Position numbers and translations under genes: made by a program
Shown: in pieces, positions 28,168-34,296 of the stretch
Layout of the letters: each line of letters begins with the position of its first letter
How positions within the stretch are numbered: position 1 is the stretch's first letter
NCBI GenBank assembly: GCA_002269645.1
Contig: NIVC01000985.1
Location: 1-64,000, forward strand
Source of the DNA: Macrostomum lignano
Lineage: Eukaryota
Length of the DNA: 64,000 nt
Reading direction: 5' to 3'
Notes under the pieces: model-generated
What the model saw: only the letters and a program-made list of their open reading frames with translations
Told to the model about the DNA's origin: nothing
Databases searched by the model: none

Positions 28168-31100
28168 TCAGGCCATACTGCCAGATCCGTTCCCGTTGCT
28201 GCACCATGGATAGTCGCCTCCCACATTGGCCTTGCCGCTCCGGAAGCTCTCGTTATTGGCGTATTCGGCTGAGGCGGACACATCCGACTGATTGTCGTCG
28301 GAGGAGCGCAGCTTGATGCACAGGTTGTAGACGCAGATTGGCAGGAAGCCCAACAGGAAGCCGGGGAAGATGAGCAGTCCCAGAAAGCCCAGAGAGACAC
28401 CTCCGCCGCCGGAATCTTTGTTAGTCACATTCCCGTCTCGTGGATTTGGTGTTGGCGAGTGCGCCGTCTTCGGTCTGTTGGCGCACTGCGTGTCTCTGAC
28501 GCTGCACTGGGCCTTCGTGCGGCATGAGTCGCCGGCTGTGGCAGAGAAGCTGCGCTCCATCGACTGCAGCTGTTCAGCGGTCTCGGTGAAACTCGAAGAG
28601 CTGTCTCCGTCGAATAGGCCAATCTGGCGGGTGACGCATTGAGAGAATTCGTAGAGATAGAATATTGCACAAAAGGTTTGGAAATGGTTTAAACTCTACT
28701 CACGAGTAGTTGGCCACGAGTATATAGTATAAATAAGGTATTCTGTTTCGTAGGCATCTTCCCCAAGTAGTGTCAAAGGGTCAGATAACAAGTTGACAGT
28801 TGTGACAGCTGGATGACAGCGTGTCAAAACTAATTGGATTTCTGGTTCTTATCAAATAGCAATAAATTCAAGCGTACTGGGTCTATAAGGGGCCAAAAAA
28901 TTAAACTCAGGACTTCTTTTTCTTTTGTGCTCTAAGGCCACACTCTTCATATTTTGTGTAAAGAAAATTTGGTTAGTTTGTTGAGGGACTGCTTTTTTCG
29001 TTAGTGAGTATGTTAACTGGTTAGTGAGCAGGTCTGTTGGTTAGTGAGCAGGTTCATTGGCTAGTGATCAGGTTCATTGGTTAGTGAGCAGGTTCATTGG
29101 TTAGTGAGCAAGTCCATTGGTTAGTGAGCAGGTTCATTGGTTAGTAAGCAGGTTAATTGGTTAGTGAGCAGGTCCATTGGTTAGTGAGCAGGTCCATTGG
29201 CTAGTGATCAGGTTCATTGGCTAGTGAGCAGGTTCATTGGCTAGTGAGCAGGTTCATTGGCTAGTGAGCAGGTTCATTGGCTAATGATCAGGTTGATTAG
29301 TTAGTAAGCAGGTTCATCATTCACAAGCGACTCACCTGAACAAAGCGATAGTCTCCCGAGCCCACCTTCCTGTACTGCCACAGCGAGAACGGAGTCCGGC
29401 CCATGCGCTTGTCGAACACTTTCCGGTAGGACCAAGCCACTCCGTTATAGCTGCCGCTGAATCCCTGCGGCCGGGGGTCGCTGCTAGCCACGCTGCCGTA
29501 CATGACCAGGTTGGCGCGCTGCAGCATGCCGCCAAAGTCGCCGGCAAAGAATGCGGGGCAGGCCGGCTCCGGTGTGGTCACCTGGCACAGGTAGGTCATC
29601 GCTGTCAAGGTGCCAAGCACCAGGGTGGCGGTGGCGTCGATCACAAATGGAGATCGGGACTCAACTTCAGTGATGGGATGCCTCTAAAAAGTGAGCATTG
29701 GATGCAGCTAAGTTACGCTCGTACTACTGATCTCTTGAACAGATTGCATAGTCCCTAGATTAGTAAAATTATAAGTCTCAATGATTGATTTACGATTGAT
29801 TAGAATGGTATTATTTTGCTGAGCTGTTGACTTCGAGATTGAGTGCGCCGTCAAAGAGACCCATTGCAGCTGGCAAGATAAATTTGTTAGCGTATGGTCG
29901 AACAGCCTACAGCAGGAGCGAAAGGTGCTACAGGCACCGCCCCATTTTCTGACCCTCGGCGAACCTAGCCCAAAGTTGTAGAAGCATCACCCCATGCGTA
30001 AACCACTACAAAAGCGCTACTTTTTACCAAACAACGTTTTTTACCTCGACAAGCGACTGCAAACAGGCCTGGGAGAAAGCCGGATTGCGCTGGAAACTGC
30101 CAGGCAAGTAGCATTGCTGCGCGTCTTCAAAGTACAACCGGTCCCACCGAGAGATGTTATTAGGATTCGGTGGCAGTTTTGTAAGGCTATAGTTGACAAA
30201 GGCGGCGAAGGCAGGGGCCGGAGACGAGACCAGCTGCAGGCTGAGGGTGCCCAGGCCAACGTTCTTTTTGTCAACAAAGGCCGCATCCGAGACGCCGACT
30301 GACTCGGTGGTCAGCAGGGTCAGGTAGTCAATGTCCATCTCAGCTTCCGGGTAGTTTAACAGTGAAATCAGGTCCTGCAAGCTGCTCAGGAAGGCTACGT
30401 AGCGCGCTTTGACCGACTTGAGGCTGATGATAAGGCCGCGCTTGCAGCTTTTATCATCGCCGCAATCGTAGGAAATCAGCTTGGCGATGCAGATGCCGTT
30501 CTCAGATGCTATGGCATTCATCTCGTCTCTCAAAGACATGCCATAAGCAGACGAGGCGTAGACTACGCTGATATAGTCGGCATTGAGATGCCTGAGCATC
30601 TGCACCATTCCCTCGATGATGGCGGTGTCTGAAGAAACGGTGCGTATGACGAACGGGTACTGTCCAATGTTACTTAGTGCAGTGGACGTGGAACCGTAGC
30701 TAATGAGCGGCAGGTTGTACATCTTCAGCAGCTGGCTGGAGGCCATAGTCTGCGTGCTCGACAAAGCGCCGACAAAGCCGACCACCTTAGTGAAATTGAA
30801 GCCGGGCGCGGAGGCCAGGGTGCCGTCCAGCAGGCTCCCCAGACGCCGCACGGTGCAGCTGGGCGAGTAGCAGGTGTCCAGCACAACGTAGCCCCAGCGG
30901 AGCTTCTTGGTGCGCCCGTCATGAACTCGCTGGAGCAAGTCTCTCACTCCGCGCAGGAAATTTTGGTCCACTTGCGACGTGTTGAAGCCCTGCGGCATTG
31001 GAGAGCCCTGGCTCAGCGCGTCGACCATATCGACGACGAACTTGAAGGCCATCGCAAACTCGTAGCCTCCAACTGACTTCTTTCTGAACGAGCCGTCTGT

Positions 31101-34100: not shown

Positions 34101-34296
34101 CTGGTACACCACTATGTCGATCAAAGCCTCCCGGAAGTGATCAGCCAGGTCGACAGTCTGCAAAGTCGCACTGCAGCCTCCGCCACTGTCGGATGCGTTC
34201 AAGTTCCGCCATCGATAGCTCCAGGCGGCAGCAGATTCTGCTGGCGGAGCCAGGCTGGCTGCTGACAATAATAAAATTACAATAAAATTCTCGCAT
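28168..34296 (-). CDS. Class-C-GPCR-like receptor with two tandem Venus-flytrap (ANF_receptor) domains, a single TM helix and a short tail, ~1200 aa
   Basis: Exons ~34296-34091, 33999-33910, 32752-32500, 32449-~32360 (3' end unresolved), 32249/32237-30045, 29683-29336 and 28623-28168. VFT2 motifs: EGDIYLGVLVPV, WGYVVLDTC, VVGFVGALSS, LPLISYGSTSTALS, YPFVIRTVSSD, SAYG, CIA, SPFVIDA, YRFVQ|IGLF. VFT1 motifs: EACG, RTGRNNRFQ, GWSYVG. Linker ECPASCPEC. TM VSLGFLGLLIFPGFLLGFLPICVYNLCI, stop at 28168. Confidence 0.85.
29005..29315. repeat. 20-bp minisatellite, ~15 copies
   Basis: Unit TTAGTGAGCAGGTTCATTGG, in the last intron of the VFT gene. Confidence 0.93.
32785..33870. repeat. (CTAA)n/(CAAA)n compound microsatellite, triplicated as ~345-380-bp blocks
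   Basis: The landmark TACGTAAAC recurs at ~33109, ~33486 and ~33831, each after a CAAA/TAAA run; in VFT intron 2. Confidence 0.96.

Follow-up and report, generated by a model that had tools for sequence, protein, structure and literature searches.

The 64,000-nt stretch of Macrostomum lignano DNA analysed here (contig NIVC01000985.1, positions 1 to 64,000; hereafter the window) contains a minus-strand gene that raises a simple question: what is a receptor that has two Venus flytrap (VFT) domains of the type found in G-protein-coupled receptors (GPCRs) of class C, one transmembrane (TM) helix, and neither a seven-transmembrane (7TM) domain nor a kinase? A preliminary description of the sequence had listed two VFTs, a three-cysteine linker (ECPASCPEC), a second three-cysteine patch, one hydrophobic helix, a tail of ~48 residues and a stop codon, and all of these are present. 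We are highly confident that the product is a type-I membrane protein belonging to an unnamed spiralian family of two-VFT proteins.

Domain organization and search for effector domains

The gene has seven coding exons (37401-28168, minus strand) and encodes a protein of 1177 residues in a complete open reading frame (ORF), running from an ATG and signal peptide to a TGA. The signal peptide is followed by VFT1, a linker triad of cysteines, VFT2, a second Cys triad, a single TM helix and a 48-residue tail. The features are as follows.

31260-34256, minus strand: VFT1, residues 22-505, spanning introns 2-4; degenerate class-C-type flytrap
31203-31229, minus strand: inter-VFT linker ECPASCPEC with the Cys triad C517-x3-C521-x2-C524
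28597-31172, minus strand: VFT2, residues 535-1035, spanning introns 5-6; intact mGluR-type flytrap
28483-28524, minus strand: second Cys triad, C1060-x5-C1066-x6-C1073, between VFT2 and the membrane
28315-28398, minus strand: TM helix, residues 1102-1129, VSLGFLGLLIFPGFLLGFLPICVYNLCI, from a Kyte-Doolittle scan
28171-28314, minus strand: cytoplasmic tail, 48 residues with no domain; Y1147 lies in an acidic E-Y-A-N context

ANF_receptor was the only domain found when the full protein was compared with Pfam at E-values up to 10; NCD3G (PF07562), 7tm_3 (PF00003), kinase and cyclase domains gave no match. A class-C 7TM hidden Markov model (HMM) was home-built from five 7TM regions, with Pfam confirming 7tm_3 in the three that were scanned. 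Searching the stop-free six-frame segments of the 64-kb window with this model yielded nothing (best E 0.3), and kinase catalytic-loop (HRD) and glycine-loop motifs were likewise absent from the window. Neither the window nor the surroundings of either paralog contain a class-C 7TM gene. These scans bear out the earlier statement that the gene has no 7TM or kinase part. Because 7TM, kinase and cyclase domains are all missing, any output would have to pass through partner proteins.

VFT2 and its pocket residues

VFT2 matches the Pfam family ANF_receptor (PF01094) with an E-value of 9e-27, and the best solved relatives of residues 516-1177 are mGluR1 (PDB, E 1.4e-20) and mGluR5 (~1e-20). A full-length AlphaFold model was built on a 31-sequence family alignment. 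In this model VFT2 has predicted local distance difference test (pLDDT) values of 85-94, and Foldseek gives a template modelling score (TM-score) of 0.83 to the mGluR1 structure 1ewk_A. A phmmer alignment places VFT2 residues S673, T696, D716, Y744, E824 and R920 opposite mGluR1 residues S165, T188, D208, Y236, D318 and K409; the mGluR1 numbering was checked at S164/S165, T188, D208, Y236, E292, D318 and K409. Across the 31 family sequences the pocket columns hold S in 28, T or S in all 31, D in 27, Y in 30 and E or D in 28, and the K409-equivalent column is R in just 14. VFT2 thus retains the residues of an alpha-amino-acid pocket, which supports an amino-acid-type sensor.

Helix F of mGluR2 joins the pocket residue Tyr216 to Cys234, which is disulfide-bonded to Cys518 of the cysteine-rich domain (PMC12394075). 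VFT2 has a helix-F cysteine, C762, 18 residues after Y744, a spacing equal to that between Tyr216 and Cys234 of mGluR2. The helix-F cysteine is invariant in both VFTs of the family (columns C235 and C780 of alignment A3).

VFT1 and its divergence

Single-sequence methods cannot call VFT1, because the N-terminal 515 residues gave no Pfam match at E-values up to 10 and the VFT1 region gave no match in a PDB sequence search. An hhalign comparison of the N-terminal domain with the protein's own VFT2 detected no similarity either; only nine residues common to both query segments matched. The profile of the Macrostomum N-terminal domain matched the relatives' VFT1 profile with an hhalign probability of 95.9% (E 5e-9, 284 columns), compared with a probability of 5.5% for the relatives' VFT2, and the family VFT1 profile is itself clearly of the mGluR type (mGluR3, E 4e-65). 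In the full-length model VFT1 consists of an alternating helix/strand core (pLDDT 70-89) and C-terminal beta strands, the first ~150 residues being unmodelled. A model of the N-terminal domain by itself had a mean pLDDT of 52.6, with the first ~146 residues unmodelled. Its top 50 Foldseek matches were all class-C VFTs, but at a TM-score of ~0.3, so that they lend weak support.

From the profile match to the relatives' VFT1, the class-C Foldseek matches and the mGluR-type family profile, we conclude that VFT1 is a real but strongly degenerate flytrap that has lost its pocket residues. At the positions aligned with mGluR1 S165, T188, D208, Y236 and D318, 11 of 11 family VFT1 sequences read S/T, T, D, Y and D/E, and the window protein reads T, S, E, G and A. 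The preliminary identification of two class-C VFTs therefore holds for VFT2 by Pfam, PDB and fold comparisons and for VFT1 only through the profile match to relatives and a fold model that is partial and of low confidence; loss of the VFT1 pocket had not been anticipated. VFT1 keeps its helix-F cysteine (C217). When residues 196-515 were compared with the paralog BOX15_Mlig025594g1, the ratio of non-synonymous to synonymous substitution rates (dN/dS) was ~0.24, a value based on 19 differences and compatible with the degenerate VFT1 being under constraint.

Cysteine triads, TM helix and tail

The linker triad C517/C521/C524 is invariant in 31/31 family sequences and is also present in amphioxus, sea star and hemichordate two-VFT proteins. 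The second triad, C1060/C1066/C1073, is found in 29-30 of the 31 sequences and in the amphioxus protein P0069, where it stands just before TM1. By analogy with mGluRs, this pattern suggests that each triad is a cysteine-rich domain in miniature, preserving the mechanical link. One lobe-2 cysteine together with three triad cysteines would make two disulfides, a pairing that we infer and that would explain the odd count of three.

Residues 1102-1129 form the sole hydrophobic helix beyond the signal peptide in a hydropathy scan. This segment is also helical in the AlphaFold model (positions 1123-1150 of P0001, the GenBank model BOX15_Mlig019918g2), and two GxxxG motifs are associated with it: GFLLG, and GVSLG straddling the N-terminal boundary of the helix. 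The ectodomain carries 11 N-glycosylation sequons.

On the cytoplasmic side, Y1147 is at tail position 23. Its context is Y-A-N-N in the window copy and Y-D-V-P in the paralog, whose E-Y-D-V-P motif is absent from the window copy. Family tails cannot be aligned and range from 19 to 514 residues, yet 31 of 33 contain a Tyr 6-40 residues past the TM helix, often after acidic residues. YxxP occurs in 15/33 tails as against 3.3 expected, and none of 2000 shuffles reached 15. Phosphorylated YxxP and YxN are SH2-binding contexts. The tail motifs thus point to adaptor-based output, short of being evidence for it.

A family of two-VFT single-pass proteins

Relatives were found by an exhaustive HMMER search of 1.8 billion representatives; word-indexed homologue searches, one of them with the 31-sequence profile, returned Macrostomum paralogs only. 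Beyond these paralogs, the best HMMER matches included dozens of proteins of 950-1540 residues in which the VFT2 match lies at ~550-900. According to Pfam the relatives have two ANF_receptor domains and no 7tm_3, NCD3G or kinase domain, and hydropathy indicates one C-terminal TM helix in all of them. At least 27 uncharacterised relatives combine two VFTs, the invariant linker triad, the near-invariant second triad and one TM helix. Members come from bivalves (Saccostrea, Solemya, Potamilus, Sinanodonta and Dreissena), gastropods (Haliotis spp., Patella, Bulinus, Batillaria and Nucella) and the brachiopod Lingula, and the hemichordate Ptychodera has a two-VFT protein with one TM helix. Every named member carries the label hypothetical or uncharacterised, and several of these entries are RefSeq models. 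A further match, the 506-residue P0054 encoded on a metagenome contig, has a single VFT and was uninformative.

A search for the same architecture elsewhere, as the preliminary description had proposed, thus found it in molluscs and Lingula. Proteins of Lingula anatina (XP_013382567, 1177 residues), Haliotis rufescens (XP_048248200) and Saccostrea cucullata (XP_062604070) have the same part order, with a C-x2-5-C-x2-C linker, a TM helix at ~1000-1060 and a tail with a juxtamembrane Tyr, and each of their VFTs is orthologous to the Macrostomum VFT in the corresponding position. They differ from the Macrostomum protein, to which they are just 17-21% identical, in that Pfam sees both VFTs and both pockets are kept, whereas the Macrostomum VFT1 is degenerate. 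In addition, their tails commonly carry YxxP where the window copy has Y-A-N-N.

In hhalign comparisons the Macrostomum VFT2 matched the relatives' VFT2 with an E-value of 2e-59 and their VFT1 with 1e-30. A crude neighbour-joining tree of the separated domains (Poisson distances, 300 bootstraps) contained a spiralian VFT1 clade (53%) and a VFT2 clade (81%). Because each of these clades includes the corresponding Macrostomum domain, the tandem arrangement predates the divergence of flatworms, molluscs and brachiopods. We considered placing its origin in the bilaterian ancestor but dropped the idea, since the amphioxus pair (96%) and the Ptychodera pair (70%) each group within their own species. 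The amphioxus duplication may accordingly be independent of the spiralian one, as may that of Ptychodera, or the pairs may have been homogenised by conversion. On these sequence comparisons, the gene belongs, as a divergent member, to a large, conserved and unnamed spiralian family. No description turned up when the literature was searched for animal proteins with tandem or double VFTs and for the identifiers of the Mlig genes; for tandem flytraps the search returned the bacterial sensor kinases BvgS/EvgS only, and otherwise the Venus kinase receptors (VKRs) and SmGBP.

Gene structure and transcript support

The exons were located by mapping P0001 onto the window and reading the junctions. All introns are GT-AG and the exons are in phase.

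37341-37401, minus strand: coding exon 1, with ATG at 37401-37399 and signal peptide MALLPFRFPALHFLLTALAIS; ends in phase 1 with a GT donor next (tblastn of P0001)
34091-34258, minus strand: coding exon 2, start of VFT1, with a NAGNAG (cagcag) acceptor (tblastn of P0001)
33910-33999, minus strand: coding exon 3, VFT1 (tblastn of P0001)
32490-32695, minus strand: coding exon 4, VFT1 (tblastn of P0001)
30045-32249, minus strand: coding exon 5, 2205 nt, residues 176-910; one continuous frame with the remainder of VFT1, the linker and most of VFT2
29336-29683, minus strand: coding exon 6, residues 911-1026; VFT2 hinge and lobe-1 return strands
28168-28623, minus strand: coding exon 7, residues 1027-1177 and TGA; end of VFT2, second Cys triad, stalk, TM helix and tail

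Past an upstream stop, the ATG at 37401 is the first in frame, and the hydrophobic N-terminus follows it directly. At the exon 2 acceptor (34258-34264), use of the upstream AG of cagcag would add one residue (A-I-S-A-S-L rather than A-I-S-S-L). The range first assigned to the gene, 28168-34296, had the correct 3' end, and exons 29683-29336 and 28623-28168 had been placed exactly, in phase and flanked by AG and GT. Position 34296 is not an exon boundary, as exon 2 starts at 34258 and exon 1 lies at 37401-37341.

A stop-free stretch on the minus strand (32249-30027, 741 codons) covers the C-terminal two thirds of VFT1, ECPASCPEC and the first ~390 residues of VFT2. Because the VFT1-VFT2 junction is inside a single 2205-nt exon, exon 5, the two halves belong to one gene, as had been proposed, and are not separate genes. 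The window protein differs at one residue from P0001, which has 1195 residues and is 5'-partial. The GenBank annotation of Mlig_3_7 derives from RNA-seq data assembled with genome guidance, the transcript ends being experimentally defined (PMC5730564), and the splice structure and stop therefore have transcript-level support.

Macrostomum paralogs

The paralog BOX15_Mlig025594g1 (P0002) is 73% identical to the window protein, is encoded on the opposite strand of the same contig at a distance of ~180 kb and likewise ends in one TM helix and a tail. At the DNA level, blastn detected one similar stretch.

30703-32254 (L002 10991-12542), minus strand: stretch similar to the paralog, 94% identical overall

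Nucleotide identity is ~98% over residues 196-535, whereas the protein ends are only 40-55% identical. The similarity begins 5 nt upstream of the exon 5 acceptor and is too low for blastn elsewhere. This segment is likely a gene-conversion tract within one exon. In the VFT2 of P0002, T, F and Q stand where mGluR1 has D208, Y236 and D318, so that its pocket looks degraded and the window copy is the one with an intact pocket.

A third paralog, P0152 (BOX15_Mlig007438g1, 1499 residues), has ~350 extra N-terminal residues ahead of a degenerate VFT1, with a weak fibronectin type III match (E 6e-4).

Comparison with known receptors

The protein is not a class-C GPCR, and it is not VKR, SmGBP-like or NPR-like. 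The preliminary description was right that it does not fit mGluR/CaSR, VKRs or SmGBP; its picture of a singular oddity did not survive, given that at least 27 relatives form a conserved family. The resemblance to mGluRs lies in the VFT2 fold (TM-score 0.83), the S165/T188/D208/Y236/D318 signature and the helix-F Tyr-to-Cys spacing. Unlike mGluR and CaSR, the protein has two VFTs, a three-Cys remnant in place of the nine-Cys NCD3G domain, one TM helix and no 7tm_3.

Two-VFT proteins with a full 7tm_3 domain occur in deuterostomes. Amphioxus XP_035696128 (annotated 'mGluR3-like'; P0069, 1307 residues, three Branchiostoma records) and Acanthaster planci XP_022103847 (P0102, 1418 residues) both have two ANF_receptor domains and 7tm_3 without NCD3G. 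They have the linker triad in common with the window protein and differ from it in the 7tm_3 domain. No description of this architecture was found in the literature either.

VKRs, which are activated by amino acids, are invertebrate receptors first found in flatworms; they too combine an extracellular VFT with one TM helix. The window protein differs from them in having two VFTs, no kinase and a 48-residue tail. NPR3 (natriuretic peptide receptor C) has an ANF_receptor-family ectodomain, one TM helix, a 37-residue tail and no catalytic domain. Its single VFT is of the natriuretic-peptide type and binds a peptide at the dimer interface rather than in the cleft. The best structural and sequence matches of VFT2 are mGluRs, not NPRs, and the window protein has no cyclase or kinase-homology domain. 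SmGBP of Schistosoma mansoni is a truncated mGluR-like protein of 488 residues that binds glutamate and has no 7TM or cysteine-rich domain (PMC3206071). It resembles the window protein in being a flatworm mGluR-type VFT without a 7TM domain. SmGBP has one VFT, no C-terminal TM helix and no Cys triads, whereas the window protein has two VFTs in 1177 residues and is anchored by a TM helix.

The iGluR ectodomain, with its amino-terminal domain above the ligand-binding domain, and BvgS/EvgS each stack two clamshells of which one binds the agonist. They offer an analogy for a blind VFT1 over a live VFT2, although their membrane and effector parts are unrelated, and both the VFTs of BvgS and the ligand-binding domain of iGluRs fall into another periplasmic-binding-protein class. 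By analogy, the Macrostomum protein would be closest in its working to the ectodomain of an mGluR placed on a single-pass anchor.

Proposed mechanism and alternatives

In the mechanism that we favour, an L-amino acid, or a small carboxylate resembling one, would bind in the cleft of VFT2, and VFT2 would close. C762, joined to Y744 by helix F as in mGluRs and probably disulfide-linked to the following triad, would pass this closure mechanically to the stalk, and the motion would reach the GxxxG-containing TM helix of a VFT-mediated dimer. VFT1, with its pocket lost and under purifying selection, would probably serve as a non-binding assembly or modulatory cap like the iGluR amino-terminal domain, and output would proceed through partner proteins. 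Taken together with the identity of the protein, these steps are on balance probable. The output route that we rank first, though tentatively, is that of a non-catalytic receptor in which a cytosolic kinase phosphorylates Y1147 (E-Y-A-N) and SH2 adaptors then dock. We are more doubtful still of the broadest version, in which the gene would be the flatworm member of an undescribed, ancient spiralian class whose paired class-C flytraps act through small cysteine modules on one TM helix. This class would represent a third output mode of class-C flytraps, coupling amino-acid-type ligands to phosphotyrosine/adaptor docking beside the G-protein mode of mGluR/CaSR and the intrinsic kinase of VKRs, with the distal flytrap of Macrostomum a ligand-blind regulatory cap.

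Several observations weigh against the favoured mechanism, each step of which is drawn by analogy with mGluRs. As aligned by eye, the mGluR1 residue that holds the glutamate side chain, R78, is apparently not kept; the ligand need not be glutamate. The AlphaFold model has pLDDT values below 50 over the triads, stalk and tail, which leaves the proposed disulfide without structural support. Homology of VFT1 rests on one profile-profile score and a fold model, and the alignment behind that model held mollusc VFT1 sequences, so it is not independent of the profile score; the VFT1 dN/dS value is based on just 19 differences. As for the tail, that of the window copy is short and has Y-A-N-N instead of the family YxxP, and the tails are mutually related, so the shuffle test overstates the significance of YxxP enrichment.

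Among the alternatives, an obligate co-receptor of a 7TM class-C receptor, supplying or modulating ligand binding through a VFT heterodimer as GABA-B1 does for GABA-B2, is unlikely although it deserves serious attention. Dimerisation is the rule among class-C VFTs, the present VFTs belong to the mGluR type, and the amphioxus and sea star two-VFT 7tm_3 proteins have the same Cys triads. However, the genomic neighbourhoods of both paralogs hold no class-C 7TM gene, there is no evidence of a partner, and the tail motifs suggest an output of the protein's own. Those motifs also bear on a sink, clearance or decoy receptor, which would bind an amino-acid-type ligand and remove or buffer it without signalling, like NPR3 or SmGBP. 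An intact VFT2 pocket, the missing effector domain, a tail of just 48 residues and the precedent of SmGBP, a glutamate-binding, 7TM-less mGluR-type protein expressed by a flatworm (PMC3206071), would all suit a sink. A conserved juxtamembrane Tyr, enriched YxxP and tails of up to ~500 residues would be needless in a pure sink and argue somewhat against one, while conservation of the helix-F Cys and triad relay down to the membrane suggests that conformational coupling matters. We regard the sink as quite unlikely.

An adhesion protein or synaptic organiser, in which the VFTs are protein-protein modules and small-ligand binding is irrelevant, would be compatible with the lost VFT1 pocket, the large ectodomain with its sequons and the three VFT2 pocket residues that P0002 has also lost (T/F/Q). 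The five core VFT2 pocket residues are nevertheless kept in the window copy and in 26-31 of the 31 relatives, as is the VFT1 pocket in 11/11 family sequences. Such conservation is hard to explain without small-ligand binding and makes this alternative improbable. Finally, the apparent architecture could be an artefact: a class-C GPCR with distant, missed or alternatively spliced 7TM exons, a pseudogene, or two fused genes. The GenBank model is flagged 5' 'partial', the genome is highly repetitive and redundant, and the introns are rich in satellites. Against this stand the VFT1-linker-VFT2 junction in one exon, the complete ORF, the lack of 7TM or kinase coding potential in 64 kb and a dN/dS below 1. 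The same ending also recurs in a paralog at another locus and in at least 27 orthologue clusters, including RefSeq models from several phyla. We therefore consider an artefact extremely unlikely, and retain a signalling receptor with an amino-acid-type VFT2 as the preferred interpretation.

Genomic surroundings

The M. lignano genome is redundant and highly repetitive, reportedly by more than half (PMC5730564), and the window contains several repeat arrays. A 23-bp satellite (consensus GATCTGGACTGAGATGGGATTGG plus a variant, >100 copies per array) forms arrays at 34350-37173 and 37915-40608 that bracket exon 1; one of these (2.8 kb) occupies most of intron 1, and the other is just upstream of the start. 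The receptor coding span is 9234 nt here and 8242 nt in GCA_002269645.1, a difference of ~1 kb that probably reflects satellite copy number. Intron 3 contains an (ACTA)n microsatellite of ~271 copies (32783-33869), and intron 6 a 20-bp tandem repeat of 16 copies (29000-29317). Many long ORFs on both strands, in the regions 2792-6461, 8447-9496, 16698-18357, 45728-46282 and 48453-50560, are not genes but tandem repeats read in translation, among them S/L-rich, PEVLVAA-type and CLSV-type ones, in keeping with the repetitive genome.

The neighbouring genes identified in the window are as follows.

42745-43158, minus strand: upstream neighbour, a nuclear hormone receptor (ligand-binding-domain exon, E 3e-7), whose GenBank model has zf-C4 and Hormone_recep
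7894-8421 and 12622-13176, minus strand: downstream neighbour, with one exon for a RhoGAP domain (E 9e-29) and another for a weakly matching BAR domain (E 8e-4), suggesting a GRAF/oligophrenin-type gene
63507-63914, minus strand: TMF1-type coiled-coil exon at the window end (TMF_TATA_bd, E 3e-23)

Significance

Animals sense amino acids, glutamate, calcium and tastes through class-C flytraps. Only in the 7TM receptors, and in part in the VKR kinases, is it understood how flytrap closure becomes a signal. A family that has two flytraps, pockets and a helix-F relay but ends in one helix and a motif-bearing tail is a natural experiment on this coupling. The degenerate VFT1 would be a flytrap turned into a non-binding module, in parallel to the iGluR amino-terminal domain. 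M. lignano is amenable to transgenesis (PMC5730564). RNA interference works in this flatworm as well, so the question is directly testable there. The family as a whole offers candidate nutrient or transmitter receptors, as yet unexplored, in molluscs, brachiopods and flatworms.

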